A stretch of 64,000 nucleotides of DNA, from the sequence record NC_048046.1; one strand, 5' to 3'. Of this stretch, positions 45,559 to 64,000 are shown piece by piece. The first letter of the stretch is position 1; each line of letters opens with the position of its first letter. The translations under genes were made by a program, and so were the position numbers. The notes below the pieces were generated by a model, which searched no databases, was not told the origin of the DNA, and saw only the letters and a program-made list of their open reading frames with translations.

Positions 45559-45594
45559 CCCCACCAGCAAGGTGTCCTTTGCTCCTCTGGTGCG

Positions 45595-46145
45595 GGGACC
45601 CTTCGAAATTAGGGTAGAAATAGGCTAAAAAATAACTAAGAATTTCAGAGCCCGGCCCCGACCCCGAGCGCTCATCTACATTTGGTGCCAATTTCGACAT
45701 CACCCCATAGATGTGGGGCAAATCTTGGGCTCTAGACACCTGGGATTCTGCGGGGCGCGTTAACCATGTTTGTTTACGTTAATGCACCCTCGGCCGGTAA
45801 CCCTAATTCGTAGCCTTAAAATCCCCCGACTTTACCTGGAGTATGGCCCAGGCACTACCCGGTCAGACCGCTCCGGTATGGCCGCGAGATCGGCGCGTCG
45901 ACAGCCTCAGCGGCCTGTCTGCGCCCTGACAGCCGCCGGCGCCTGCCGACAAACCTACGGACCTCAGCCACCAAACCTACGGAGTCCGGCGATCGAGGTC
46001 CGCAGGTTGGGGGACCCTTAGAAATTGACCGGGGGACCCTTCAAAATTCACCCACCAGGGACCCTGGAAATTTCACCGGGGGACCCTTCGAAATTCTGCC
46101 TCCGGGGACCCTAGGAAATTCTGGAGCCAGGGACCCTGGAAAATT
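45595..46145 (+). repeat. GGGACCCT-N2/3-AAATT direct repeats x7
   Basis: Starts 45595, 46011, 46033, 46058, 46080, 46105, 46130. Confidence 0.9.
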
Positions 46146-46323
46146 CACCCAGAATTTGGCCGGATCACCGGCCTATTTAAGCCCAACCCTCAGATCGGCA
46201 TAAATATCGGCGATTTTACCCCATTTTCGGCCCAAAAACCCTTAAAAATCAGCTTTTTAGTCCCATTTCAGCATCGGCAACGCCCGCTCCGCGCCCTGAC
46301 TGACCGCAGTCATCCTTCAGCGC

Positions 46324-46546
46324 AAATGTGACTCACCAACCTGTCGTCACAATTCCTCCCACGTTTTCAACACGTTACAGAGTCACGTCTCAAATCCGGC
46401 CACGCCCAGCCCGATCCGGTCATCCGGCCAAACCTTAATCCGGCCATATCCGGACATCGCCTCGTCCCAGAAACTTCAATGAAATCAATAAACCCTCCAC
46501 ACCAAACGTGACTATCCGGACATATCCGGCCACGCAAACGTGACTC
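46324..46546. repeat. AAAYGTGACTC (GANTC-containing) cluster 1 with interspersed ATCCGG x7
   Basis: 46324-46334, 46380-46390 (reverse), 46504-46514 (variant), 46536-46546. Confidence 0.75.
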
Positions 46547-46583
46547 TCGACATATTGCTGCACCGCAGCATAGCCCCAGCCCG

Positions 46584-46632
46584 TACAACCCATTTCGGTT
46601 GTATTTCCGCTTTACAACCAATAACGGTTGTA
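46584..46632. promoter_or_regulatory. tandem palindromic operators TACAACC-N6-GGTTGTA x2
   Basis: 46584-46603 and 46613-46632. Confidence 0.7.
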
Positions 46633-47049
46633 TCTGCCCAGGCACATCCCCTCATCCCTGTCAACCCCACCTACCTGCGACCACCTCGCAGTCCTGATTT
46701 GGCAGAAACGAGACTGTGTCGCCGGCGCCGCGCCCCTGCGTTATCGTGCCGCGCTTGCCAGAGCGCCAGGATCGTGCCCTACTGTCGATCGGGAGCCGGC
46801 CTCCCTGGCTCAAGTGCTTCGGCGTAGCGGGAAGATCGAACCCAGCCCCGTGACTCGCTGCAATGCCGCCTTGAGCGACCTCGATCGTCTCTCCCAAGCG
46901 ATATCGAGGTCAGGCCGGCTCCTATCCCACCTCCAGGTCACCCAAAACAGGGCTAGTGGCGCGGATTCACCCGTTTTTGGGCTAGTCTGGGCTCAAAACA
47001 GCCTAAATCGGGCGAAAAACTCGACAAAACGCCATTTTATTCGCAAAAC

Positions 47050-47169
47050 TTGACGCGATTCCATTAATTTGACGCGACGTCATTCCATTTCGCCAACTTG
47101 ACACGACGCCATTTCATTTCGCCGACTCGACATGACGCCATTTCATTCTCTTGACGCGACGCCATCCCG
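47050..47169 (+). repeat. five iteron-like repeats TTGACGCGACGCCATT...
   Basis: Starts 47050, 47069, 47098, 47127, 47151. Confidence 0.8.
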
Positions 47170-47202
47170 TTCTGCCCGGCGCTCGACCACCGCCCAGGTC
47201 GG

Positions 47203-47430
47203 TTAAGGTAAACGTCAGGCCCGTTAACCATGATCGTTAGGGTTAACGCCCAGGTAGGGTTACGAATTAAGGTAAACGCGGAGTTAGGGTTAACGTTCGT
47301 TAAGGTTAACACCACGTCGCTCGGCTAACAGTAGTAGTGTTAACGTGCAACGCACTGTTAGGGTTACGAATTAAGGTTAACGCGCCCGGCGGTCATACCG
47401 GGTAATACTTAACGGGCGTTAGGGTTAACG
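47203..47430. repeat. dense cluster of TTAA(C) half-sites
   Basis: About a dozen TTAA in 230 bp, as GTTAGGGTTAAC and TTAAGGTTAAC units; TTAACCAT at 47224. Confidence 0.75.
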
Positions 47431-47434
47431 CCCT

Positions 47435-47506
47435 AAGAGCGCGCAGCCTCGCCGTTGCGCCCCTACGGTTCGAAGAGCCCGGCCCTGCCGGGTCCTGCCC
47501 GGCTAC
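47435..47506 (-). ncRNA. putative structured small RNA, copy 1
   Basis: Invariant 26-nt core; downstream of the minus-oriented box 47530-47544. Confidence 0.6.
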
Positions 47507-47573
47507 CTCTACACCCTAGCGGCTATTTCTTAACAAAACGTAAACGCCCGACACTTTCGCGCCGGGCGTCTCG

Positions 47574-48487
47574 TTATGCGTCGTCCGCTTGCGCGGCGGC
47601 GCCGTAGTCGTGTTGATCCCATAGGACGCCCAGCGTTTGGTCAGGGCTGAAATGGGGGCAAACCGTTTCGATTGTGTCGTAAGTCTCCCGGAAGGCGAGC
47701 GCGTCGTCATCCTGGAGCCAAACCGACGTTTTGGCGGCCTTGTTGCGCAGCGTGTACGCCGCGCCGTTGCCGTAGCTGTCAAGGGCGAAGCGTTCGCCCT
47801 CCGATATGCGAATCGGGCCTGAGTACATGGTCAGCACCCCGTCGGGTCGGCCTTGGCGTAGCGCCAGCGCTCGCCGTCATGCCAAAGCCCGGTTGAGTGA
47901 ACCGTTCCGTACTCGCGAATCTCGCGACGGGCGGTTTCGGGGTCGATTCGGTCGTATCGCCACCCCTTGCCGGCCGAGTCTTCGGAGGCTTGCGCCTCGC
48001 GTAGCTCTTTGGCCGTCATTTCGAAGATGTGGCGGGAGTAGCCGACGATTTCACCGGCCTCTTTCATGGGAATTCGGCGCATGACGTACATGTCGCGTTC
48101 TCCGAAGGCGCCGGGCGTTTCCGCCCGGCGCTAGGTTACCAGAGCGCCCAGAGAATGAGCGCGGCGAGTAGCAGGGGCGTAAGCTTGATCAAGCTACAGC
48201 CCCAAGGCATGGGGGACGCCCCAAACGGCCGCCGCGTTGCGCGGGCGGGCGTCAAGGGCCAATCGCCACCGGTAGAGGTATTCTCGCGCCGCCGCTTGTT
48301 CGGGCGTCCGGCCGTGTCCGATACGCTCCGCCATGCGGGTTGCGACGTCGGAGCCGGGAACCTTGCGCACCGGGTCGGAGCACATGTCCGCGAAGAGCGC
48401 GCACGCCTCTTTGATTGCCGGCGCGTTGTCCGCGAAGGACTGGCGCAAGAAATCGACGAGAGGGACGCGTTTAGGCGTTTCGTTCAT
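47574..48487 (-). CDS. three small cassette genes (47574-47837, 47831-48091, 48194-48487)
   Basis: ORF track; fed by the minus-oriented box 48555; bidirectional hairpin near 47545-47570. Confidence 0.6.
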
Positions 48488-48658
48488 AGGGCCTCACGAT
48501 GTCAAAGAGCGCGGCGGGGTTGTCCGCCGACCCCTGCAATCTCGCACCTATTTCTTAACAAGACGTTAACGGCCGAATCTTTTTTGCGTTTACGTTTTGT
48601 TAAGGAATGGGCGTTAGGTTGCTCTCGACGGCGCAACCCGCGCCCCTGGAGCAAGGCC

Positions 48659-49066
48659 ATGTTTTCGAACCTCCCGCCGCACCTCTTCGTTTCGTCCGCT
48701 GGCGGCGACCTCTTCGACACCCGCGACCCGGATTGGAATTTCAAGCCGCCGCTTCGCCGCGCCTATTCGACGGCCGCCGACCCTATCGAGACGCTTTCTC
48801 AGGTCAAGGCGGCCTTGCGGGCGGGTCCTTACGCTTGGCCGGGCGGGTATCCCCTGTATTTCGTCACCCGCGACGGCGCCGCCCTGAGTTTCGACGCCGT
48901 GCGCTCGCAATTCGCCAGCGTGGCGGATGACTTCATGTCGGACTCCTCGACGGGCTGGCGCGTCTGCCGTGTTGAAATCAACTATGAGGATTCCGACCTG
49001 CGATGCGACCACACGGGGAAAGCTATCCCCGCCGCGCACGGTGACGACGAAGACGAACCGGCTTAA
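48659..49066 (+). CDS. cassette gene, AWPGGYP-motif protein
   Basis: Leader family A plus CCTGGAG RBS; YAWPGGYPLYFVT.DG..L....VR..F ... C..T motif. Confidence 0.75.
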   Translation: MFSNLPPHLFVSSAGGDLFDTRDPDWNFKPPLRRAYSTAADPIETLSQVKAALRAGPYAWPGGYPLYFVTRDGAALSFDAVRSQFASVADDFMSDSSTGWRVCRVEINYEDSDLRCDHTGKAIPAAHGDDEDEPA

Positions 49067-49132
49067 CCTTTTGTTAAGAAATAGCCGGTAGGGTGAAACC
49101 TGCCGGCGCATCCCGCGCCCTGGAGCCTGCTT

Positions 49133-49426
49133 ATGTCGCACGTCTATGACATCGAATATACCGACACGTTCGCCGGGGAGGCGAATTACTCATGGGTTCG
49201 CCGGGCGACCGTGACCATGCCAGAGCTAACCCATTACGGGTATGACGGCGGTTCGAACTACTCCAAGGCGAACAAGGTTTTTAACCGCGAACTCATGAAG
49301 CGCGCCAAGGCCGCCATGGGCCTGACGGGCGTCAAGGGCGTCTCGACCACGCACGGGGACACCCTGGAGTTTCGCCCCTACGGCTCCGCGACGGTCCTTT
49401 TCGCCAACTATCGCGAAATAGACTGA
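49133..49426 (+). CDS. cassette gene, TDTFxGEANYSWV-motif protein
   Basis: Leader family A plus RBS; motif recognised by eye. Confidence 0.75.
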   Translation: MSHVYDIEYTDTFAGEANYSWVRRATVTMPELTHYGYDGGSNYSKANKVFNRELMKRAKAAMGLTGVKGVSTTHGDTLEFRPYGSATVLFANYREID

Positions 49427-49491
49427 CCACGACGCCCGGCGCCTGGACGGCCGCCGGGCGTTCGCTTGCCCAGCCCGTTAACCATGTTTTT

Positions 49492-49562
49492 GAAAAGCGC
49501 CCAGCCTCGCCGTAGCGCCCCTACGGTTCGAAGAGCCCGGCCCCGCCGGTCCCGCCGGCTAC
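49492..49562 (-). ncRNA. putative structured small RNA, copy 2
   Basis: 59 nt identical to copy 4; downstream of the minus box 49586. Confidence 0.65.
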
Positions 49563-49689
49563 AGGTCCAATCTAGCGCTCATTCCTTAACAAACCGTAAA
49601 CGCGAGAATCTTTTTCGTGTTTACCTTTTGTTAAGAAATAGGGTCTAGTGTTCTCGTGTCGGGCGGATCGGCCGCCCTGGAGAACCTGA

Positions 49690-51630
49690 ATGCAAAACAT
49701 GCCCAAGCATGACCGCGAAGTCATCTGCGCCATCGTTACGCACGCCCTGGCGCTCGGCTATGAAGTCGCCTGCGCTGATACCGAACTCGACTGGACGACT
49801 GACCCGGCCGCGATCTTCGCCGACCTCGGCGAGTGCGACGAAGAGCGAATCAGCTTCCGCAAGCCCGGCGACCCGACGCGCAAGCATTGGGTTTATCTGG
49901 TCTACGGGAACGGGGAAGGCGAAACCGTCTGCGACTACCGCGCCGACGCTGAAACCCGCGAAATCCTCGCCGTCGCCGACGCCCTGGCCAGCGTGCAAGA
50001 CATGGAAGCGCTCGCGCTCCAGCACCGCAAGCCCTTCACGGAAGACGTGGGCGGCGACCTGCAACTGTCCATCGCCTGGACCGGGACTGGTTTCATGTAC
50101 GGGCTCGCCCGTGGCCCGGACGCGCCTTCGCTGGACCTTCGGCGCCTGCAAGCGGTGTCTTGGCTCGCCACGCGCCCCGCCGACGACTACCGGAGCGCCG
50201 CCACCGTTGACCAAGTCGTCGCGGTCATGGCGGAAGTCGACAAGGTCCCGCACCTGATCGAACGCGCCGCCTAAATCGAACGCCCCGGAATCTTTTTCCG
50301 GGGCGTTTACCTCTTGTTAAGAAATAGCCGTTAGGTTGCTCTTGTGGCGGGACGGTCCCGCCCTGGAGAAGACCCGATGAACGAAGCCCAAACCAACGCC
50401 GCCGCCGCGATCAAGACCACGGGTGAAACGATCCTGGCGAAGATCGAAGCGGCCCGCGCGGAAGTCGCGGCGAACCCGCACCTCGCCGGCCAATTCTACC
50501 TTGTCGCCGACACGGGCGGCGGTCTGGTCGTGAACTCGGACGGCGCGCACGGCTACCGCCTGAGCGGCATGTTTAGCCCCCTGACTCTGGCCTTCGACGC
50601 CACCGCCAAGGAAGAGGCCTATAAATTCGCCGGTCACTGGAATCGCCGCATAACGCCGGCTCAACGGGCCTCGCGCTGCACCGTCACCGTGACGACCCGT
50701 GAGGAGGCCTGGAGCGCCCTCGAAAAGTCCTGGCGCGAAACCTTCGCCATGATCGAAGCCGCCAAGAAAGACTAAGGCGAGCGCCCCGGCCGAAAAGCCG
50801 GGGCGTTTACCTCTTGTTAAGAAATACCCTCTACAGTCCAACTTGTCGGCGCATCCCGCGCCCTGGAGCAAGTCCCATGCGTAAGCCTCGCCTGTATTTC
50901 GAATATTACGGCGTCACCGTCTGGCGCAACACGTCGCCCGGCTTCGCCCTGCGCTGGAGTGGCGGCGGGTACGCGGCCGACACCCAAGAGGGAATCCGCC
51001 GCCTGATCCGTGAGGGTCGATGAGCAACGCCGCCCGCGCCGAAAAATGGATCGGCCGCGTTGAGCAAGGAGTCGGCCGCGCCCTCGAAAGAGCGGCGCGG
51101 TCCCGGCCCTTCGCTATCGAGGCGGAGGCCGCCCCGTTCCTGGCGACCTTCAAGCGTCAGGCCGCCGGACATGCCGCGCGCGCCCAGACCCTGGCCAGCC
51201 AAGGCGACCGCGTCGGCGCCTTGGTCGAGGCGGGACACGCGCAACGGTGCGCCGCGAACCACGCGAGAATTTTGGAGGCCGTCGACTCCGTCTTAACCTC
51301 TTGTTAAGAAATAGGGGCTAGGTTGCTCTTGTGGCGGGACGGTCCCGCCCTGGAGAACCTGAGATGAGCACCCTTCCCGTTCGGACCCTGGCGCAAATCG
51401 GTCACCTGACTTGGGTGGCCACGCGCAAAGGCGCCGGCTTCGATGCGGCGTTCGCCGATAGTGACGACGCTATCCGCCACGCCATGAACACGGGCGGCAA
51501 CGTCGGCCACACCCTCCTAGGCTGGATTGACATGTTCAGCCCTTCGGCGACGTTCGAAGAGAACCAACGGCAGGTCGCGGCCTTCCTCGAACGCGGCGAC
51601 GAATTCGACCGCGTCATGGGCCAAGGCTAA
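49690..51630 (+). CDS. cassette genes (49690-50274, 50377-50775, 50877-51023, 51020-51307, 51364-51630)
   Basis: Each, except 51020, follows a box, leader hairpin and CCTGGAG RBS; terminators at about 50281, 50782, 51637. Confidence 0.75.
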
Positions 51631-51698
51631 GCCAAGCGCCCCGGCAGAAAAGCCGGGGCGTTTACCTTTTGTTAAGAAATACCCTCTAAGGTGATCAC

Positions 51699-51768
51699 GT
51701 ACCCGGCAGGACCGGGCGGGCCGGGCTCTTCGAACCGTAGGGGCACAACGGCGGGGCTGCGCGTTTTT
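51699..51768 (+). ncRNA. putative structured small RNA, copy 3
   Basis: Occupies an entire cassette slot between box 51661 and box 51794, has no RBS or ORF and ends in a T-run. Confidence 0.7.
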
Positions 51769-51862
51769 CAGCGCCTCGAAAAAGTTCACCGCGTTAACGT
51801 CTTGTTAAGAAATAGCGCCTAGGGTGGCTGTGTGGCGGGACGGTCCCGCCGGAGAAAACGAC

Positions 51863-53379
51863 ATGACCACGCAAGCCGCCCTCGCCGCCCGCCTGGACCG
51901 CGCCGCCCGGATCATCCGGGGCGAAGTCGCCGCCTCCAAGCGGAAAGAACGCAAGGCCCGCCGCGCGTTTTCCCGCGCCCTCGCCGGCATGGACATTCCG
52001 ACCTATGTCGCTTGGCTGAACGATCCGGCCGACTCCTTCGCCCTTACCGACGACGTCGCCCATTGGGCGCAAATCGGAATCACGAACGCCGCGCAACTCG
52101 GCGACTACCTGAACGGGTGCGTTCGTCGGGAAATGGAAAAGGACGCTCGCAACGGTTATTGCGATGACGCCTTTGACGACTACGCCGAACGCGGCGGCTA
52201 CGGCGGCGGCGATGACGGGGAGGGCTACACCTTCGACCGCGACCGCGCCGAAGGGATCGCCGCCGACAAGGCCAAGCGCGACGCCATGCACGAAGACATG
52301 CCGTTTTAACGGTTTGTTAAGAAATAGCGTCTAGAACGAAACCACGGGCGGCGGATCGGCCGCCGCCCGGACCTTCGGAGCCCCGAAAATGTTCCTCTGG
52401 ATTTGGACCGTCGCCACCGACGAACTGACCCCCGCCTATAAGAACCCGCCGGCCGTCGCGCCGGAAGGTTGCCTTTTCCTCATGGCGGCAAACCAACGCC
52501 AAGCGGAACGCGCCCGCGACCTCGCCAAGGCCGCCGGCTAAACCCCTCAATCTGGAGCGCAAGCCCATGACGCAACGCTACCGCCTCGCCGATCAAATCA
52601 AGGTCGCGAACGAGGTTTCGAATCTACTCTATTCGGCCTCCGACGTCGTCGCCGTCGCTGCGCAGTACGAAACGACGCCCGCCGGTCAAGCCAAGCTCGC
52701 CAAGCTGCGAAGCGACCTCATCGGCATGAGCGCCGGCGCCCTGACGCACAAGCCGCCGGCCGCCGTGCTCGAAACCCTCGTTTGGGTTGTCGAGTTGGCG
52801 CAAGATCGCGCTACCGGCGCGGACTTCAACACGCCGCAAGAGGCCCTGGACGAACACGACGCCTTAGCCTTCGTTTGCGACTGGCTGAAGGCTCAAGGTC
52901 AGGACGTGTCGCCGATCATCGGCGCGCAACCGTCTTCCGAAGCGCTCGCTAAGTTGGTAGCGGCTCGCGACGCCGCACAAGCTGAACTCGACGCGCTGGA
53001 GGTTCCGGCCCTGCCTGAAGCGGTTGACGTCGTCGCCGACGTTCTCCGCTACAAGGACGCCCAAGGCGACGCGGACGACGTCCTTTCCGCCCTGGCGCGC
53101 GCCGGCTTCAAGGTCGTTCGGGAAGGGGAGGCCTAGCCTATGGCGCAAACCTTCCCCCACGTGCTGGCGTCGCAGCACTTCCCCGGCCGGGGCGCTACGG
53201 CGCCCGGATCGGTCGTCCTTCGCGACCTAGGCCCGACCGCGCCGCATCGCTACGTCACCCACTTCCGCAACGAAGAGGACCCGGCGAAGCCGTATCACGT
53301 CATGGGCCACTATTTCGCCGAAGACGAGGAAGCGGACGCACAAGCCGATTTCCGTAAACGCTGCGCTCGCGGCTACTGA
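51863..53379 (+). CDS. cassette genes (51863-52309, 52567-53136, 53140-53379)
   Basis: Boxes 51794 and 52306, leader hairpins, RBS. Confidence 0.7.
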
Positions 53380-53407
53380 TCAACCCTCAGGACAAGGAGT
53401 CCAGACC

Positions 53408-53599
53408 ATGACCGACAAGACCCCCGCCAAGCCGAAGAAAGCGCCCGCCAAGGCCAAGGCCGCCCCGGCTCCGAAGGAAGCCGCCGCCGCGCCCAAGACG
53501 CCCCGCAAGGCCAAGGCCGCCCCGGCTCCGGCCGCTCCGCGTCCGAAGGTGCGCGGCCTGAAAGCCGCCCTTTTCGGGGGCGCGTTCAACCGCCTGTAA
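53408..53599 (+). CDS. 63-aa Lys/Ala/Pro-rich histone-H1-like protein
   Basis: AAGGAG RBS; KAKAAPAP repeated twice, PAKPKK. Confidence 0.7.
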   Translation: MTDKTPAKPKKAPAKAKAAPAPKEAAAAPKTPRKAKAAPAPAAPRPKVRGLKAALFGGAFNRL

Positions 53600-53692
53600 A
53601 ACTTCCCGGCGTTTACCTCTTGTTAAGAAATAGGAGGTAGAACATAAACACGGGCGGCGGATCGGCCGCCGCCCGAACTCCCTGGAGGCCCC

Positions 53693-54376
53693 ATGGCCCG
53701 TAAGCTGACTCTCTCGCTGCTCGCGAACCCCGATTTGAGCATGGCGAACGTCACGACCACGTCGCAGCGTATCGAGGACTGGACCGACACCCTTTATCCC
53801 GAAGACGGGAGCGAAGGCGCTGAAATCGTCCTGCCGCCGGTCACGTTCGGCGCCGTGTATGAGCGCGCCGAAGACCTGCTGACCAAGTCGCAGCAACGCA
53901 CCGCCGAACGGTCCCCGAATCGCGAAGTCTCGCCCGACCTCGCCGAACGTTTCGAGGGGAGCGACGGCCACGACGAATGGCGGGCGTCGTTTGACCCCAT
54001 GATGAACTATGTTTGGCCGGTCGCGCTTCCCTACCGCGCCGAAGCCTCGCAAGTCGCCGCGCTGCTGCAAGAATTCTGCCCGGTCATGACTCTGGTCAAC
54101 TTCGGCGACGACTCGCCGTTCTGCTCCGAGTCCCACGCCTTCGCGCTCTCGGGCGGCGGAATGAACCTCGCCGACCAAATCGCGACGGCCTATCTCTGCG
54201 CCGGCGTCGTTCCGCCCTCGTCTCTGCTGGAATCGCTCCCCGGCGTGATCAGCGATTATCAACGCGACAAGGTCGCCCCGGTCCTGCGCAAGGCCTATCG
54301 GAAAGCCGCCGATTACCACGCGTACCGGGCTAAGGCGATCCGCCGGGAAGCCGGCCGCGTCTTCACCAAGTCCTAA
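53693..54376 (+). CDS. cassette gene, hypothetical (LSGGGM.LA..I..AY motif)
   Basis: Box 53612, leader family B, CTGGAGG RBS; terminator near 54385-54410. Confidence 0.75.
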   Translation: MARKLTLSLLANPDLSMANVTTTSQRIEDWTDTLYPEDGSEGAEIVLPPVTFGAVYERAEDLLTKSQQRTAERSPNREVSPDLAERFEGSDGHDEWRASFDPMMNYVWPVALPYRAEASQVAALLQEFCPVMTLVNFGDDSPFCSESHAFALSGGGMNLADQIATAYLCAGVVPPSSLLESLPGVISDYQRDKVAPVLRKAYRKAADYHAYRAKAIRREAGRVFTKS

Positions 54377-54439
54377 GCCTGGAGGCCCGGCGCACCCCGC
54401 CGGGCCTTTAGCGTGTCTGGCGCGTTAACCATGTTCTAG

Positions 54440-54509
54440 AATTGCGGGCAGGTTCGCCGTAGCGCCCCTACGGTTCGAAGAGCCCGGCCCCGCCGGTCCC
54501 GCCGGCTAC
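54440..54509 (-). ncRNA. putative structured small RNA, copy 4
   Basis: 59 nt identical to copy 2; downstream of the minus box 54534. Confidence 0.65.
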
Positions 54510-54635
54510 AGGACTCACCCTAGACCCTATTCCTTAACAAACCGTAAACGTGAAAAAGAATCTCGCGTTAACCTCTTGTTAAGAAATACCCCCTATGGTC
54601 CTCTCGACGGCGCACCCCGCGCCCTGGAGTCTGAC

Positions 54636-55241
54636 ATGACCCTTCCGACCCTTTACCTTCGCCGCGAACCGACGTCGCAAGGCGTCCCGAACGTCGATGA
54701 CTCGCCGGAGCGTTTCGACATCGTGGCCTATCGCGACAAGGCGATGACTGACGCCGCCGGCCGCTGGCCTTGGTTCTATCAGTCCAAGCCCCGCAAGGGC
54801 GCGAAAACCGTCATGCTCAATTGCATGCGTCACCGCGCCGCGTGGCGCCCCGATCATCACGGCGAAACCCCGTTCATGCTGGAAACGCGCCGCGCCATGA
54901 CGGCCGCGACGATGCAAATGGACGCCCTGATTTCCCGCCTGCACGCCGAAGGCCGTAAGCTGGCGCTCGCCGGGACCGTGGCCTATTCCAAGGCGCACCC
55001 GCGCCGAACGGTGACGTTCGTTAGCGCCATGGGCTCCAATTGCCTGCACGTCACGCCGGGCGGGACGTCCTATCGCGGCGAATACCAACTGACCACGGGC
55101 GACCATGGCGACTACCCGCCGCCGGCCTGGATGGAAGAGCTAGACCGCCTTTGCGACGACTACCGACTCGGGACGTTCCCGGATAACCTCAAGGTCGTGT
55201 GCAAGGGTGGAAAGATCATCGAGCAAGTTTCCAACTGGTAA
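54636..55241 (+). CDS. cassette gene, hypothetical
   Basis: Box 54568, leader family A, RBS. Confidence 0.7.
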   Translation: MTLPTLYLRREPTSQGVPNVDDSPERFDIVAYRDKAMTDAAGRWPWFYQSKPRKGAKTVMLNCMRHRAAWRPDHHGETPFMLETRRAMTAATMQMDALISRLHAEGRKLALAGTVAYSKAHPRRTVTFVSAMGSNCLHVTPGGTSYRGEYQLTTGDHGDYPPPAWMEELDRLCDDYRLGTFPDNLKVVCKGGKIIEQVSNW

Positions 55242-55307
55242 CCTTTTGTTAAGAAATAGCCGGTAGGTTCATCCCTGCCGGCGCATCCCGCGCCCCTGGA
55301 GTCGAAC

Positions 55308-55958
55308 ATGCCCCGCACCGTCACTAAGGAAGTTTTCCAGTACGACGAACTGACGCCGAAGGCCCAAGAAAAGGCCCGCGACTGGTTCCGCGACATGCTG
55401 GACCGCACCGCCGATAACGAATTCGCCGAACCCGTCATGGAAGAGGCCGAACGCGTCGCCGGCATGCTCGGAATCACCTTCAAGCCGACGCGCGGCGGTG
55501 ATCCGGTATCGTGGTCGGGCTTCTACAGCCAAGGCGACGGCGCCAGCTTCGAGGGCCGTTACGCGGCCCCGGAAAAGCCGGCTTTCGAGACGATCAAGGC
55601 CGAATTCCCTACGGAATTGAAGTTGCAAGCCATAGCGGCCGAACTGGACGCCTTCCAAGATCGCCACGGCCGCCGACTGGTCGCGGACATCACCCGCAAC
55701 GGCCGGAGCAACTACGTTCACGCCTATACCGTCGATATCGACGTTTGCGAGCAAGACGAGGCCGCCGACGACGGACTCGTTAACGTTTCGCCGACGACCG
55801 AAAAGGCCATCGCCGACGAACTGCGCAATTTCATGGGCTGGATTTGGGATCAACTCCGCGAAGCCTATGAAGGCGACCGCGAGGACGAAACCGTCGCCGA
55901 CAATATCCGCGCCAACGAATACGAATTTGAGGCGGACGGAACCCGGACCCGCGACTAA
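55308..55958 (+). CDS. cassette gene, WSGFxSQGDGASF-family protein (often auto-annotated as antitoxin; function unproven)
   Basis: VFQYDEL...AQEKARDW, WSGFYSQGDGASFEG, I.ANEYEF..DG. Confidence 0.7.
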   Translation: MPRTVTKEVFQYDELTPKAQEKARDWFRDMLDRTADNEFAEPVMEEAERVAGMLGITFKPTRGGDPVSWSGFYSQGDGASFEGRYAAPEKPAFETIKAEFPTELKLQAIAAELDAFQDRHGRRLVADITRNGRSNYVHAYTVDIDVCEQDEAADDGLVNVSPTTEKAIADELRNFMGWIWDQLREAYEGDREDETVADNIRANEYEFEADGTRTRD

Positions 55959-56008
55959 CGCAACCCGGCCGGCGCTTCGGCGCCGGCCTAGCCTGGAAAG
56001 GCCCCGCA

Positions 56009-58595
56009 ATGAACATGGCTCGCAAAGAACACGCCGGAAGCTACCAAATCGGGATTTGGGGCGTTGAGCGCATCCGACGCGGCGTCTGGGAAGCCCGCGC
56101 CAACGGGCCGGGTACGCTTGGCGACGGCTCGCCGCATACGTATCCGACGCTCGACGCGGCGCACCTCGCCTTGACCGGCGAGCCCCGGCGAGAAATTCGC
56201 GGCTCTTAACCTGTTGTTAAGAAATAGCCGCTAACCTCTAATCATCGAACAACGGGAGACACCCCCCATGATGACCAACCCTCACGCCCTGGCGATCCTC
56301 GCCGCCGCAAACAAGATTCTTCCCCTGACGCACCTGCACCCGTGCGACCAACGCGCGCCGGCCGTCGATATCATCGGCGACCTGTTCAAGATCGCCGACG
56401 ACATCGACGCCGCCGCCCCGGCTTCGGCCGTGACCCTGCCGGCCGGTAACGAGACGCTGGCGAAGCTGGGCGCCGCCGTCGCCCTGGCGCGCCTGGAACT
56501 CGAAAGCGCCTATCAGCGGACCGAAAGCATTAGCGAGCGCCACCGCCTCGCGCCGCTCATCGCCACCATGTCGGACGCCCTCAAGGCGTACCGCGCCGAC
56601 CCGGCGACGCCCAAGGCTCCGGCCGCGCCCCTGCCGCACGCCTTCGCCACCATTCCGGACGGTTCGGCCCTGCAACGCGCCACCGCCGCCGGTATCGCGA
56701 TCTTTCAGGCCGAAGGCTCGACGTTCTACACGCCCGGCCCGTCCGCCAACTTCACCCGCGACGACTGGCGCGGCCCGTACTACGGCGCGGCCGAAGCCGC
56801 CCGCGCCGCCCTGGCCGAACGCAACGGGAAGGCGGCCTAAGCCATGCTGAATCCGATCCTTCGCGAACGGCGCGAGCCGGTCGATATCGTCCTAGACGCC
56901 CTCAAGGGCCGTATGGGCGAAGCCGACGCTTCGGAGGCCTGCGACTCCGTGTTCCTGGCCCTGCAAAACGAGGGTTACGCCGTCGCCCCCTTCACGATTG
57001 AAGGCCGCCGCCTCACGCAAACGGATACGGGCGTCAAGCTGGGCGACGCGCTCCGGACGCTCTTCGAAGCGGTCCCGAACTACGCCGTTCGGTCGCAACG
57101 TCTCGCCGACGCCGTGAGCGTCGCTAGCGGGTACGTCTATCAACCCCGGTATCGCTTCCTCGCCGACGACGGCACGGGCGCGGCGATCCTGACCAACTGC
57201 GACGACGGCCGGAGCGTTTATTTCCAGCCCGGCCCGGACGCCGACGAGGCCCGCGCCGAATTCGAGCGTTCGCAGTACACCGACGAGACGGCCGAAGGCT
57301 TCGGCGTCGCCGGCCTCTGGCGCGCCAAGGCCGCCGCCTATTTCAATGACGATCCGGAAGGGCTCTAGCCGATGAGCTACGACACGAAGACTCTCGCCGC
57401 GCAAACGATCATCGACGCGCACACCGCCGGCCGTGGCCTGGAGGAAGGCCAAAGTCGGGCAACCGACCTCTACCACGTTCTCGACTCGCTGCTGACGTGG
57501 AGCGACTTCCACGGCGTGGACTTTGACGCCACGCTTTCGGAGCTACGCGCCGACCTCGCCGAAGAGCCGCCTTGCGCCGGCAATGTCGGCCGGGTCGTCA
57601 TCACGCTGGAAACCGGCGAAGGCGCCCGCGAGGAATTCGTGTCGCGTCACTACACGATTGCCGAAGCCGTCGCCGCCCTGGATGGCCCCGGTATCGACGC
57701 CAAGGCCCGGCATGAGGGCCGTTACACAATCGCCGCGCCGCACGGGCTGGGCTCGGACCTTGAAGCCGTCCCCCTGGCGCGCAAGCTGGGCTATCAGGGC
57801 AAGGATTGCCCCGCCGCCGCCTTCGCCTTCCTCTCTACCCGGATTCCCTGATCATGGCCAAGCGCAAGCCCTACACCCCGAACCCGTTCGCCCGCTACAG
57901 CGTCGGCGGCCTCTCCGCCGAAGCCAAGGCCGCCCGCCGGCCTTCCCTGGCCTGCCTTCGCGCCATCGTCCGGGAAGCCGCCGCGCTAAAGGCCGAAGCC
58001 GTGGCGCGCCTCGCTGATCAACGGTGGATGCGCGGCGCCTCGCTCATGGCGCAAAGCTGGACCCGTGACAACGCGGCGATGAGCGTTCACGCCCTAGCCC
58101 GGAAGAACCTCGAATATCTCCGGATGCGAGCGCACCTCACGGTTTCGCCAGAGCGGGCCGGCTCCTACGCGCCCGCCGGCTGGCCTATCGACCGCCCGGC
58201 CCTGGAAAAGTGGCAAGCCCTCAACCCGCCGCCCCCGGCCCGTGACTATGACTCGCTCATCGGCCGCGCCGCCCGCGCCTCCGGCTGGGCTTAAGGAAAG
58301 GATTCCCATGTCGGACCTGATCAAGCTCAACCCCGAACCCGCCAACATGACCGCCGTCAAGCTGGGCGCCGTCATCCTGTATTTCAGCTATCAGACCCTT
58401 GTCGGGTTCCGTTGCCCGCATCTGGGCACGGTGTCCAATCCGGACGGCAAGGGCTACGGCCGAACGACCGCCGGCCACATGACGAAATTCGGCCTCGCCA
58501 GCGCTCGGACCACGGCGACGGAATCGGATTTCCAGACGCTCGCGCTTCGGGCCGTTCAAGGCCACGTCCGCGACATCGGCGAATTGCTGATCTAG
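56009..58595 (+). CDS. cassette genes (56009-56209, 56268-56840, 56844-57368, 57372-57851, 57854-58294, 58308-58595)
   Basis: ORF track, close packing, box 56206. Confidence 0.65.
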
Positions 58596-58609
58596 TCGCG
58601 CCCGTTCAA

Positions 58610-58710
58610 GAGTCACGTTTCAGGCCTAACCTGACTCCAACAGAGTCACATTTTCCCGAAACCGTGACTCCGCCTCGATTTCCCGTCACGTTCTGGTCTA
58701 AACGTGACTC
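58610..58710. repeat. AAAYGTGACTC (GANTC) cluster 2
   Basis: Five GANTC at 58610, 58633, 58643, 58666, 58706; the outer pair forms an exact 11-bp inverted repeat. Confidence 0.85.
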
Positions 58711-58743
58711 GTCCTAGTTCCTCAGTAAAAACAAGGAGTTATC

Positions 58744-58818
58744 TTGCGCTTCATCGAACACATGCTTGAAGGTTCCGGCGTCCTTTTCGCAATCGTCATC
58801 CTTTTCCTGCTGCATTAA
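58744..58818 (+). CDS. 24-aa hydrophobic peptide MRFIEHMLEGSGVLFAIVILFLLH
   Basis: AAGGAG 5 nt before TTG; stop lies inside box 58815; not in the ORF track. Confidence 0.5.
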   Translation: MRFIEHMLEGSGVLFAIVILFLLH

Positions 58819-58901
58819 CCTCTTGTTAAGAAATAGCGGGTAGAGGTAGAGGGGTCAGGCGCACACCGCGCCGGCCCCTCTTTCTGTTGGAGCGCAGACC
58901 A

Positions 58902-59393
58902 ATGCCCGACTACAAGACGAACGACCCCAAGGGCTACATGGGCGACCCCCGCCGGGGCGCCGCCATGGGCCGTCCGACCTACGCGCCGGACGCCGCCGGC
59001 TGGACCGTGGAAGGCCTGAAGACGGCCGCCGCCCTCGAAGAGGACCGCGCCCGGATCGCCGAAGAGCAACGCGAGAACCGCCCCGGCGACGGCTATAAGC
59101 GCCAGTGCTGGGAAGCCGCCGCCGCGTCGTTCCGCAAGGAAGCCGAACGCCTCCGCTCGCTCATCCCGGCCGCCCGCGCCATGCTCGCCGCCTCGCCGAA
59201 GATCACCCTTCAACGCGTCCGCCTGGACTCGGGCGGCTACGACCGCAACGGGACCTATTTCGGGCATGACCTCCCCCTGTATTGGGCGGCGGACGAATCC
59301 GGCGACTATGACGCGACGTTCCGCGCCGCCGACCGCAACGCGGCGAAGGCCATCGTTCGCGAGACGTACCCCGCCGCCCGCTTCTACAACTAG
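58902..59393 (+). CDS. cassette gene, VRLxSGGYD..G.YFG..PLYWA-motif protein
   Basis: Box 58815, GGAG RBS; motif recognised by eye. Confidence 0.75.
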   Translation: MPDYKTNDPKGYMGDPRRGAAMGRPTYAPDAAGWTVEGLKTAAALEEDRARIAEEQRENRPGDGYKRQCWEAAAASFRKEAERLRSLIPAARAMLAASPKITLQRVRLDSGGYDRNGTYFGHDLPLYWAADESGDYDATFRAADRNAAKAIVRETYPAARFYN

Positions 59394-59470
59394 CCGGCGT
59401 TAAGGGGTTGTTAAGAAATAGCCGGTAGGGTCACACCTACCGGCGCACCCCGCGCCCTGGAGAAAATCGG

Positions 59471-60823
59471 ATGACCTCGCAACTCTGCATCGCCGACGAA
59501 AACGCCGCCCTGGATTTCCTGGCGCGCGCCGTCCCCGCCCTCTGTGACGCCGGCATTATGCCGCCGACGCTGGATATTCTGGATTCGCTCGCCGCCAACC
59601 CGAACGCGTACGGTCTTAGCCGCGTCCCGGCCCTGGCGCCGCTCGCCGCCGAATGGGCCGGACCGTATCAGACGCAAGCGAATGACGGCGAAGGTCCGAC
59701 CACGGTCCGGGCGCTGATCGTCGCCGCGCTGGGCGCCGATGAGTCCGGCAACTTCGATATCGGGTTCCGCACCTACGCCGTGAACGACTCGGAACACTGG
59801 AATCTTGCCGGGACTCCTCTGGAGGGCGTGCCGGCCTATAGCCTGTATCTGATCCGCGAAGGCGAGCAAACTTACATGTGCTCGCTCACGCCATCGAGCT
59901 ACGCCTATGGGATTCAGAACGTGTTCCTCTATCCCGATCAAGACGGCTTGCCGGCTGTCAATGAATACGGGCAAACGGCGGTTGAAGCGTATATGGACGC
60001 CGAAAACCCCGAATATGAGGGCGTCGAAGATACCTATTTCGGGTATATGGGCGACCGCGCCGCATTCGACCGCCGCGAAGCCGAAGAGGGCGACGTTTCA
60101 GAGCGCCTTAGCTTCGATAAGTCGGTTTTCCGTGTGGACCTCTCCACGCTGGACGGGTTCGCCGCGTCGCCGGCCAATCCCCGCGAAACGACCGCGTTCG
60201 CCGACTTCGAAACCCTCGCCGCCGCCTTCTACAAGGCCGCGTGCGACTCGGCTTGGGAGGACGCGAAGGAATACGTTAGCGGCAACGCTACCGAACCGCG
60301 CATTTTAACGGGTTGTTAAGAAATAGCCTGTAGGTTCTCCCCATGGGCGGCGGATCGGCCGCCGCCCGACCGGAGCGCCAGACATGGCTATCTCGACCGC
60401 CGCCCTTAACGCTCACGTCGCCGAAGTGGCGGAATGTGAGTCCGACCTGAACGAAGCCTTTGAGGCTTTCGACCGGGGCGAAGCGCCCGACCGTGGCGAC
60501 TGCGATTATGCGTTTCTGAAGCTGGAAACGGCGGAAATGCACCTCGCGCAATTCCTGGCGCCGGTCTTGGCGTCGCCGATCTTTGTTCACGCCTAGGAGG
60601 GCCTGACATGTCCAAGCGTCCTGACTTCACCGGCCGGCTTCCCGTCCGCGACGACGTGCAAACGGTGACGTGTCACCGCCCGCCGACGCGCTCGGAAATC
60701 AACTTCGGCCACGGCGCGACGCATTACCGGGATTTCCCGGTTGCGGCCGTGTGCTGGGCGGGAACCCGGTTCAAGAAAACGTGGTTCGTCGCTGACGACG
60801 GGCTTCGCTACTACACGTCTTAA
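59471..60823 (+). CDS. cassette genes (59471-60319, 60384-60596, 60608-60823)
   Basis: Boxes 59400 and 60305, leaders A and B, RBS. Confidence 0.7.
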
Positions 60824-60900
60824 CCTCTTGTTAAGAAATAGGCCCTATGGTCTATTTCGAGGGCGGCGGATCGGCCGCCGCCCGAACCGGAGTAGACGCG

Positions 60901-61332
60901 ATGTCCGCCCGCTTTCAAACCGCCGCCGCCGCCCGTCAATTCATGCTCGGCGGTAACGCCGTGGTCACGCTGCAAAGCGAAAAGACCGGCGCGCGCTTCA
61001 CCTACAAAATCAAGGCCGCCCCTGACGGTGCGGTGTCGTTCGTTAAGCTCCTGACGGGTCAGGACAACGAATCGGATTACGCCTATATCGGGTTGATCCG
61101 GGGCGCTCAATTCGCCCGGACGGCTAAGGCTCGCGTCACCGCCGACGCCCCTAGCGTCAAGGCCCTGGAATGGGCCTGGAAGGCGCTAAGCGCGGATCGC
61201 TTGCCCGATACCCTGGCGATCTTCCATGAGGGCCGTTGCGGGCGCTGCAATCGCCTCCTGACGGTCCCCGAGTCCATCGAGTCGGGCTTCGGCCCGGAAT
61301 GCGCCGGCCGCGTCCTGCGCCAAGCCGCCTAA
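60901..61332 (+). CDS. DUF6011-like Zn-finger protein
   Basis: C-terminal HEGRCGRCNRLLTVPESIESGFGPEC; box 60820, leader family B. Confidence 0.75.
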   Translation: MSARFQTAAAARQFMLGGNAVVTLQSEKTGARFTYKIKAAPDGAVSFVKLLTGQDNESDYAYIGLIRGAQFARTAKARVTADAPSVKALEWAWKALSADRLPDTLAIFHEGRCGRCNRLLTVPESIESGFGPECAGRVLRQAA

Positions 61333-61378
61333 CCTCAACGGGCGGGCCTCGCGCCCGCCCAAGCCCTGGAGTCCTGCC

Positions 61379-63844
61379 GTGGCCTATTATCCGCCCGTCA
61401 AAGGTCAAGTTCACCGTTTCCGCGACTCGGTCGCCCTGTACGTCGGGACCGGCGAGACGGTTTACGTTTCCGCCGCCGACGCTCGCAAGATCGCCCGCGC
61501 CCTGAACAAGGCCGCCAAGTCCTGCACCTCGGAGCCGTTCGCCCAAAGCTCCGGCCTGACGTTCTCGTTTTCGTTCGCGGACGGTCGGGAAAAAGACCTT
61601 CCGCGTTAACTTGTTGTTAAGAAATGCCGTCTAGGGTGACGGCATGGGGCGGTGGATCGGCCGTCGCCCTAGCCTGGAGCGAAAGCCCATGACCAAGACC
61701 AAGCGCCCCGCCGGCTACTACTCGAAAGCCGCCCGCGAAGCCCGCGCCCTGGCTCGCCAGCGCCGCGCCGCCGCCCGCCTCAACTGGTCGGACGAAAAGC
61801 GCCACAAGATGGCGACCAAGTCCGCCAAGTTCTTCGCCAAACACGCGGCCCGCGCCGCCCTGGCGGGGAACGAGAAAGAAACCCGCCGCCTATCGGTTCA
61901 CATGACCCGATTCGACAACGTGCGCCGCATGGTCGGCGCCGTGTTGGCGGTCCGCGCCGCTCGCTTCCGCATCGAGGCCGCCGCGTAAGGCGGCCTCACA
62001 ACCCCTAGAAAGGACACCTCTTGAAACACGCCTCCGAAGCGCTCGCCGTCGTCGCCGTGTGCGGACTCCTGGCCTTTTGGCTCTGGAATGACTCGCATCC
62101 GGTCATGGTCGCCGTGGGCCTGGACTGTCAGGGCGAAACCGTCCGCGTCTACGGCGCCGACGACGCCCCGGAAGCCTCCAAGGTCTGCCGGACCGTGGAA
62201 ATCCACAAGGTCCCCTAGAAAGTTCGGCCTCTTAACCTCTTGTTAAGAAATGGCCTCTAGGGTGACTACATGGGCGGCGGATCGGCCGCCGCCCGAACCG
62301 GGAAAATCAAGATGACCCGTCAAGCTAAGCCCTTCGCTCACCTGAAGCCCAAGACCGGCGAAACCAAGGCGCAAGCCTTGATCCGACTCGGTGATTTCTC
62401 GCGCTTCGGCATTATGGCCCAACTGCTGATCATGGAAGCTCTCGGCCGCAAGTTCGGCGCTATCGAGTACGGCCCCCGTGATACGAACATGGGCAAGCTC
62501 AAGCAATTCCTGAAGGCCGCCCCGAACGACACCGTTGCGGCCGTGGAAGAGTACGCCGGCGCCGTCGCCGCTATGGGCCTGGAAAAGGTCCGCGAACAAT
62601 TCAAGGGCGGCGCGGGCGCGCTGATCCACCCCGACTCCTGGCATGGCGTGGCGGTGGAAATCAAAACCGCCCTCGACGCCGCCAAGGCCTAACCCTTCCC
62701 CTGTAGAGCGTACCGGGGCGGCGGATCGGCCGCCGCCCAAACCCCTAGGACTGGAGTCCTTCACATGTCCCGTTCGTTCCGTCACTCCGCCGCCTTCGAA
62801 GATACCCGCGCCGAATTCGCCGCCCGGAAGAACGCCCGCGAAAGCCGCCGCCGCGAATTCGAATCCATGGGATTCGATAACGCCGACGCCCTGGCCGTGC
62901 GCCGCTTCCATCGCCCCTACAAGGGCCGGAATCGGTCGGTCCTGGACATCGAAGCCTAGGCCCGGAAACGGCCCTTCTAGAGCCCCTACAGAAGGCCCGC
63001 CCTAATCGGCGGGCCTTTACTGTTTGGTAAGACCTTCCCCGCTAGAGTGTGTGCATGGACAAGCCCGCTCTCTTCGAAGTCACCACGCGCCACGCCGACG
63101 GATCGGCTACCCGTGGGATCGTCCCCGCCGCTCTGGTCAAGACGGCCTATGCGCAAGCGCTGCGCAAGGCCTGGAAGGCTAAGGCGGGCGACCTCGTGAC
63201 CGTGCTCCCCTACGGGGTGGCCCTGCCGAATACCCCTGCCCAAAGCGAAAGGCTTTTCTCGCTTTAACCTTTTGTTAAGAAATGGCCTGTAGGGTACACC
63301 CATAGGCAACCCCTGGAGCTACCCCCGATGACCCTGCATCACACCCTCATGGAAGCCCTGGACACGGCCCAGATGAACGGCGCTACGGTCGACCCCCTGC
63401 ATGCGGACATCCGCCGCGCCCTGCGCCTTGCCCAGATGGCGGGCGCTACGCTGGACACCCCGGAAGAGGTGGCCGCCGCTGTGCTGCGCATGAAGGTTGC
63501 GCAGTCGATGAACCGCCGTCGCAAGGCCTAGGAAGAAAGGCGTTCGCGTTTACCTCTTGTTAAGAAATAGGGGGTAATGTCTCTACATGGGCGGCGGACA
63601 TCCCCGCCGCCCGAACCTCGGAGCCCCTGCCATGTTCCCCCGTAACGTCGCCATCGCCGAAGCTGCTCAGTTCTCGCAAGTGTCCATGGCGGACTATCGC
63701 GAGCATGTCGCCGAAGAGCGTCACGCCATGCGCGCGAAGCTGGCGAAGCGAGCCAAGCTCAAGGCGGACATCAAGGCGGGCGCGTTCGCCTTCGCCCTGG
63801 CCTTCGTGGCTGCTGGCGTGGTTCTCGCTCTGGGCGTGTTCTAG
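61379..63844 (+). CDS. cassette genes (61379-61609, 61689-61988, 62021-62218, 62312-62692, 62765-62959, 63049-63267, 63328-63531, 63632-63844)
   Basis: Boxes 61606, 62232, 63016, 63264, 63549; leaders; (CCT)GGAG RBS. Confidence 0.7.
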
Positions 63845-64000
63845 GGGGAGGGGTCGCCCTCGGCGCGAGTCGAGGGTACCTAAAAGAATCCATCTCGACC
63901 CCTTGACAAAATCGACGGGCCGGGGGAGGGTCTTGTTTCAAAATGGGACGGCCAGGGACCCAAGGCCACCCTCCCTCGTTAACCATTTTTCCGGGGCGCC

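Follow-up and report, generated by a model that had tools for sequence, protein, structure and literature searches.

The right end of the genome of Caulobacter phage CcrPW carries, in four copies, a short element that is real, under purifying selection, non-coding, coupled to a promoter, and previously undescribed. The window analyzed here is the last 64 kb (64,000 nucleotides) of the 308,141-bp genome (NC_048046.1), in which window position x corresponds to record position x + 244141; window 46500-55500 matches record 290641-299641 at 100% identity. We tentatively interpret the element, with slightly less than even confidence, as an early transcription unit lacking an open reading frame (ORF) that may specify a small RNA acting through its sequence. 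The four copies, designated A to D from left to right, share a 26-mer that occurs exactly four times, at 47460-47485 (−), 49518-49543 (−), 51718-51743 (+), and 54465-54490 (−), and that had no match in 100 shuffled sequences with three mismatches tolerated. All four lie inside the annotated 18.4-kb terminal repeat (record 289735-308140, window 45594-63999), and each is therefore present twice in the packaged genome; a BLAST search against the CcrPW record located the element at eight places. A preliminary description of this DNA had reported both the shared 26-mer and an identity of 59 nt between copies B and D, and exact counting and direct comparison confirmed the two claims. The identical run is part of a longer duplication that includes a back-to-back promoter pair (repeat families D8 and D15). 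The copies are dispersed rather than tandem, with one promoter each. Relative to the neighboring genes, copies A and C are co-directional and copies B and D convergent, a variation in orientation that an independent gene would show.

The most informative evidence comes from the layout of the early cassettes. A census of the early-promoter octamer yielded 25 instances in the window, every one of them within the terminal repeat; the remaining 45 kb has none. At 21 of these 25 promoters, a GC hairpin lies about 9 nt past a TAnnnT −10 and is followed by a GGAG-type ribosome-binding site and an ATG at +41 to +66. The other four are exactly the element copies; in these, the conserved core comes after the hairpin, and both the ribosome-binding site and the start codon are missing. 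Each CcrPW copy lies about 30 nt downstream of the TAnnnT −10, with the promoter, whose motif is a TTAA-N7-TTAA-type box at the −35 location, directed into the copy. The same orientation holds in all 13 copies from Caulobacter phages, where the box stands 62-65 nt upstream of the core, and the copy in Brevundimonas phage Bajun is also preceded by a promoter-like region in that orientation (14 of 14 copies). The preliminary description had stated that the element has neither a ribosome-binding site nor a conserved ORF, which agrees with the promoter census and with the reading frames. ORFs on the opposite strand that overlap the copies differ in frame relative to the core, and the short ATG-led frame that follows copies B and D is unconserved past its eighth codon and has no counterpart behind A and C. 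With no ribosome-binding site, no start codon, and no conserved ORF, a small protein gene was rejected. The element thus combines the anatomy of an early cassette and a fixed promoter-to-core orientation with an absence of coding potential and with purifying selection.

The features of the four cassettes are as follows, in window coordinates.

47513-47544, minus strand: copy A promoter, with the TTTA-N7-TTAA box at 47530-47544 and the −10 TAGGGT at 47513-47518
47438-47503, minus strand: putative transcribed element of copy A, with the 5′ hairpin at 47487-47503 and the 49-nt conserved core at 47438-47486
47424-47429: first GTTAAC past copy A, 20 nt beyond the ACGGCG of the core; it starts a TTAACC-type array reaching to about 47200
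49569-49600, minus strand: copy B promoter, with the box at 49586-49600 and the −10 TAGATT at 49569-49574, back to back with the plus-strand promoter of the next gene
49496-49559, minus strand: putative transcribed element of copy B, with the 5′ hairpin at 49545-49559 and the core at 49496-49544
49475-49495, minus strand: conserved tail of copy B, a four-U run and then a stretch with the exact CtrA half-site TTAACCAT (plus strand, 49478-49485)
51634-51663: hairpin resembling an intrinsic terminator, ahead of the copy C promoter
51661-51692, plus strand: copy C promoter, with the box at 51661-51675 and the −10 TAAGGT at 51687-51692
51702-51769, plus strand: putative transcribed element of copy C, with the 5′ hairpin at 51702-51716, the core at 51717-51765, and a five-U run to 51769
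51793: start of the box of the next promoter after copy C
54517-54548, minus strand: copy D promoter, with the box at 54534-54548 and the −10 TAGGGT at 54517-54522, back to back with the plus-strand promoter of the next gene
54443-54506, minus strand: putative transcribed element of copy D, with the 5′ hairpin at 54492-54506 and the core at 54443-54491
54425-54432, plus strand: exact CtrA half-site TTAACCAT past copy D, 25 nt downstream of the core

The promoters resemble those already described in related phages. The terminal repeats of phiCbK-like phages, CcrPW included, are enriched in predicted CtrA sites, and for two phiCbK promoters of this class, those of gp005 and gp018, CtrA was shown to bind and promoter activity disappeared in a temperature-sensitive ctrA host (Mascolo et al. 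2022, PMC9437464). The element cassettes share with these the promoter motif, the location in the direct terminal repeat, and the layout through the 5′ hairpin. They differ in that the published sites were treated as upstream of protein genes, whereas the element cassette holds no gene and its promoters are all of one variant. Measured against the CtrA box consensus TTAA-N7-TTAA (PMC3692519), the upstream half-site is TTTA and not TTAA in all four CcrPW copies and in 13 of 13 Caulobacter-phage copies, so the element box is a CtrA box with one mismatch; TTAA occupies this half-site in most gene-driving promoters. By analogy with the phiCbK promoters, CtrA control of the four promoters is plausible. 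The earlier claim that a CtrA-box promoter points into each copy therefore stands as to orientation and as to the gene slot of an early cassette, with the qualification that the box is one base off the consensus.

We collected relatives by BLAST over about 50,700 phage records and then read the loci. This search identified 14 copies, 13 of them distinct, in seven phages: four each in CcrPW and CcrColossus (Colossus), two in RBC57, and one each in BL64, Ccr2, BL57, and Bajun, the last of which was a weak match in BLAST. They fall into four syntenic types, with A, B, C, and D in CcrPW and Colossus, A and B in RBC57, B in BL64 and Ccr2, and A in BL57; the Bajun copy is type A-like and has no 5′ hairpin. 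Type A is the most widely distributed. A covariance model, of the kind suggested in the preliminary description, scored all 14 copies at 56 bits or more and nothing elsewhere above 23 bits. With nhmmer and the covariance model, the early regions of phiCbK, Rogue, and CcrBL9 gave no copy, nor did another 150 kb of CcrPW, and Bajun gave only its one copy. Pattern scans of IMG/VR filtered with the covariance model returned only CcrPW and Colossus, and a BLAST search of plasmids gave no match. A loose pattern with 17 specified bases hit at least 240 loci in metagenome and genome contigs, all of them chance among the matches listed. Within the window itself, a 14-base piece of the core recurs in sense at 53189-53202 (+), inside an annotated gene, probably by chance.

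Close relatives differ in whether they carry the element. BL64 and Rogue, members of the same species, differ by an insertion or deletion (indel) of about 535 bp that comprises a 97-aa gene, copy B, and its promoter and that is bounded by promoter repeats; Ccr2 and phiCbK differ by a 1.17-kb indel. By this comparison, the element is accessory. In CcrPW, the 97-aa gene lies beside copy B at window 49133-49426 (+) (phrog_22729). It moves within the indel among Caulobacter phages and had no match in Pfam, NCBIfam, or PDB. Agrobacterium, Pseudomonas, and Stenotrophomonas phages have homologues with 55-66% identity but lack the element. An obligate link between the element and this gene was rejected, given that the homologues in Agrobacterium and other phages stand in tight operons without it. 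We likewise rejected a repeat of the repetitive extragenic palindrome or miniature inverted-repeat transposable element type, a match that the preliminary description had named as decisive against its RNA reading. The copies have no flanking inverted repeats, the only ones found being pairs of back-to-back promoters and the hairpins of terminators; direct promoter repeats bound the BL64 indel; and all 14 copies are coupled to a promoter.

The B-type block served as an internal control for selection because the gene and the element travel together. Among five phages, the core and tail were invariant in 64 of 70 columns. In the adjacent gene, the corresponding figures were 47 of 98 for third codon positions (Fisher p = 1e-9) and 211 of 294 for all columns of the coding sequence (p = 3e-4). 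The B-type tail alone was invariant in 20 of 21 columns, and the promoters in only 60-66%. In an alignment of the core (A3), 29 of 49 columns were invariant, with variation limited to a few positions. These figures bear on whether the element has any function. Recombination between promoter repeats might have spread an emptied cassette, with gene conversion or recent exchange between phages keeping the copies alike; this would suit the patchiness of the element between close relatives (BL64 versus Rogue, Ccr2 versus phiCbK, and RBC57 versus Ccr2), the promoter repeats that bound the BL64 indel, and the decay of the Colossus D copy to about flank-level identity. However, the adjacent gene shares the indel block with the core yet has diverged much further, so recent block transfer cannot explain the identity. 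Moreover, identity among the four CcrPW copies ends sharply at the core boundaries, and a copy can still be recognized in a Brevundimonas phage with a large terminase of only 48% identity. With fewer changes in the core than in the neighboring third codon positions, the five-phage comparison already points against a functionless repeat, which we regard as distinctly improbable.

What is conserved, as read from the aligned copies, is the sequence and not a fold. The preliminary description had presented the element as a structured RNA with two hairpins, and this part of it was not supported: folding energies of single copies equal those of shuffled sequences (z −1.5 to +1.2), and hairpin 2 breaks in seven of the homologues. 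The sequences quoted for hairpin 1 were correct and its compensatory changes are real, and it is the only part that covaries. Since the same kind of hairpin follows nearly every early promoter, however, it is the generic 5′ hairpin of early transcripts and not specific to the element, and it is missing from the Bajun copy. The sequences quoted for hairpin 2 were also correct, but the T/A variant in its 3′ arm breaks a pair. In the alignment of 14 sequences, none of the 11 pairs of hairpin 2 and its extension shows a compensatory change; four vary only by breaking, and three are altered on one side (U-G to U-A). The breaks fall in PW_A, PW_C, Col_A, Col_C, Col_D, BL57_A, and Bajun. In partition-function calculations, the probability of hairpin 2 was about 1 in the B types and PW_D, 0.80 in RBC57_A, and at most 0.15, mostly near 0, in the other seven. 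A longer hairpin model did no better than column shuffles, and RNAalifold gave different folds for different alignments (three consensus folds), all built on invariant columns. The alternation of G and A opposite two U residues in the extension, with pairing only in the promoter-sense RNA, was correctly described. The requirement of every candidate fold for G-U pairs, possible only in that RNA, is the one strand-specific hint, and a weak one. Two other identities of the core were rejected: a G-quadruplex, since the later G runs are not conserved, and a recombinase site, since the arms around the central palindrome are asymmetric as read from the alignment. As a separate observation, the 5′ hairpins between promoter and ribosome-binding site across window 48600-63620 fall into three sequence classes, each conserved to the loop, which suggests that these classes are recognized by something rather than being mere stabilizers.

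Matches to known RNA families were sought as well. At gathering thresholds, Rfam 15 returned a single tRNA for the whole window, and at E values up to 10 no match in 47300-54700 overlapped any copy; ARAGORN reported nothing at the element, and none of the Rfam families of CRISPR repeats matched it. A known Rfam family, another finding that the preliminary description had considered fatal, was thus not encountered, and a tRNA-like or ribozyme identity was rejected on the ARAGORN and Rfam results. Elsewhere in the CcrPW record, at about 140712-141096, Rfam detected above threshold a permuted alphaproteobacterial-type transfer-messenger RNA that lies between tRNA genes and is unannotated.

A more specific proposal is that the element is a Y-RNA-like partner of a phage Ro60 protein. 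Partner RNAs of a Thermus phage Ro60 have been described as hairpins with a CGAA motif, and CcrColossus has been reported to have Ro60 and a Y-like RNA (PMC12135203). CcrPW does encode a Ro60 homologue (TROVE and Ro60 von Willebrand factor A domains; record 114590-115999), and CGAA is present in the core. Like YrlA and Y RNAs (RF02553; Chen et al. 2014, PMC4201824), the element would be a small non-coding RNA encoded by a phage that also encodes Ro60. Unlike them, it matches no YrlA or Y_RNA model even at E values up to 10, and it does not lie beside the Ro60 gene, from which it is separated by about 175 kb. That gene is directly preceded on the same strand by three YrlA-like candidates below the Rfam threshold (gene and candidates together, record 114590-116985). 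Nor do the distributions agree: Ro60 occurs in CcrPW, Colossus, and seven Brevundimonas jumbo phages (67-70% identity) that have no element, and is absent from five of the seven phages that carry it (Ccr2, BL64, RBC57, BL57, and Bajun). Because of this mismatch and of Ro60's own YrlA-like candidates, we rejected the proposal as extremely improbable.

These observations are most consistent, in our tentative view, with an early small RNA. The cassette has a standard terminal-repeat promoter, with its CtrA-type box at −35 and TAnnnT −10, and the standard 5′ GC hairpin, and a G-rich core of about 50 nt replaces the ribosome-binding site and ORF of the other cassettes. Host RNA polymerase with CtrA would transcribe it early into an RNA of about 70-100 nt. 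This RNA would work in trans on a protein or nucleic acid partner, which it would bind by means of conserved primary sequence and not of a conserved fold. The copy number, four per repeat and eight per packaged genome, may raise the dose. Several results weigh against this interpretation. The models support no common secondary structure. The terminator scanner found no canonical intrinsic terminator at the end of any copy, and a U run occurs only in types B and C (four and five U, after a long imperfect hairpin), with none in A and D. A search of the window for a complementary target gave only two 13-14-nt matches to the core, near chance expectation, and pairing with the 21 early leaders equaled that of shuffled cores (mean z = −0.07). 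The Colossus D copy has diverged about as far as its flanks. Finally, a GTTAAC or CtrA-type site lies 15-39 nt past the invariant block in 14 of 14 copies, which hints at a component acting in cis or at the DNA level.

This last result keeps alive a different reading, in which promoter, core, and downstream CtrA-type site form a local control module that works in cis, either at the DNA level or co-transcriptionally. The unit might be roadblocked or interfering, facing convergent genes at B and D and firing into an origin-like TTAACC/iteron region at A, or the core might be a protein-binding or pause site rather than a diffusible RNA. GTTAAC is otherwise scarce, with 16 occurrences in the 18.4-kb repeat, seven of them in one array. 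The site past the Bajun copy and past copies of types B and D matches TTAACCAT exactly, a sequence that PMC3692519 gives as a CtrA half-site, and in type B it lies within the nearly invariant tail. Past type A, it is the first motif of the TTAACC-type array, beyond which lie the 29-bp iteron-like units; the type A copies of four Caulobacter phages, as well as the Bajun copy, point into such an array. Conservation of sequence rather than fold also suits a cis unit. Against these points, the relation to neighboring genes is inconsistent, with two copies convergent and two co-directional, the site past copy C is nothing more than the next promoter's box, and the core has no operator-type dyad or direct-repeat symmetry as read from alignment A3. 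Furthermore, phiCbK, Ccr2, and Rogue keep the TTAACC array without a promoter or element facing it. We consider a cis-acting unit unlikely, although it deserves to be kept in view alongside the small RNA.

The region into which copy A points has features of its own. Window 45594-47430 is a stretch of about 1.8 kb without an annotated gene, with the TTAACC-type array at 47200-47430 on the minus strand past copy A, five 29-bp iteron-like units at 47040-47176, an AT-richer stretch, and a second tandem array at 46009-46151. The TTAACC array is also found in phiCbK, Ccr2, Rogue, RBC57, and BL57 and after the Bajun copy. The stretch resembles an origin or a cluster of CtrA-binding sites. Its position raises the idea that a G-rich transcript made immediately upstream of an origin-like region primes or activates DNA replication through a stable RNA-DNA hybrid there. 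The RNA-sense strand is indeed G-rich with several G runs, type A is directed into this region with its array, iteron-like units, and AT-richer stretch, and about 1.8 kb there is free of annotated genes in both CcrPW and Colossus. Yet types B, C, and D are not beside such a region, relatives have the array without the element, the later G runs vary, and G-richness alone leaves the invariance of the non-G segment of the core unexplained. We judge a role in replication to be very improbable.

Known phage and host RNAs provide further comparisons for an early small RNA. The put RNAs of lambdoid phages (HK022) are about 70 nt long with two hairpins, lie directly past early promoters, and occur more than once per genome; they act on the polymerase that transcribes them, causing read-through into downstream genes, and their stems are conserved. 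The element resembles them in its length of about 70 nt, its two proposed hairpins, its promoter-proximal location, and its multiple copies, but two of its four copies have no co-directional downstream gene and its stems are not conserved. Phages also deploy RNA decoys against host defense, such as repeat-mimicking anti-CRISPR RNAs and pseudo-antitoxin repeats, which are short and non-coding and for which copy number matters. Unlike these, the element has no Rfam CRISPR-repeat match, its copies are dispersed with their own promoters rather than tandem, and no defense system is implicated. A multi-copy decoy RNA, made from CtrA-timed early promoters and with an invariant sequence that would titrate a host factor, such as a cell-cycle regulatory RNA or protein or a defense component, in the first minutes of swarmer-cell infection, is in our estimate quite unlikely. 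CcnA, a non-coding RNA of the Caulobacter cell cycle with probably CtrA-dependent expression, pairs through a short C-rich loop with GGGG motifs of its targets (PMC8959179). The phage core has an invariant G run, but a four-base motif is no evidence, and CcnA comes from one host gene, located at the chromosomal origin.

Several other features of the window were noted. An unannotated 97-aa ORF at 48194-48487 (−) is equipped with an early promoter, a 5′ hairpin, and a ribosome-binding site of its own. Since CcrColossus gp002 shares 77% identity with it, the CcrPW annotation probably lacks a gene here. The 135-aa "DNA ligase" at 48659-49066 (+) had no Pfam match, and its name, which rests on a PHROG label only, is doubtful. 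A second dispersed repeat family with an 11-base core (D12/D13) occurs at eight places in 11499-36565, outside the terminal repeat, and may represent another promoter class.

To our knowledge, CtrA-dependent terminal-repeat promoters in phiCbK-like phages have so far yielded only small proteins without an assigned function. Should RNA be what four of the 25 CcrPW promoters make instead, the element would be this model phage group's first candidate for an early product that is non-coding, and one that is constrained more strongly than the neighboring proteins. Its layout also offers a rule for finding such units in other phages, namely an early promoter and a 5′ hairpin without a ribosome-binding site. 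Should the RNA prove to be a decoy, the host cell-cycle clock would trigger an RNA-based takeover. If the small RNA is real, it would give a direct handle on the first actions of these phages in the swarmer cell.

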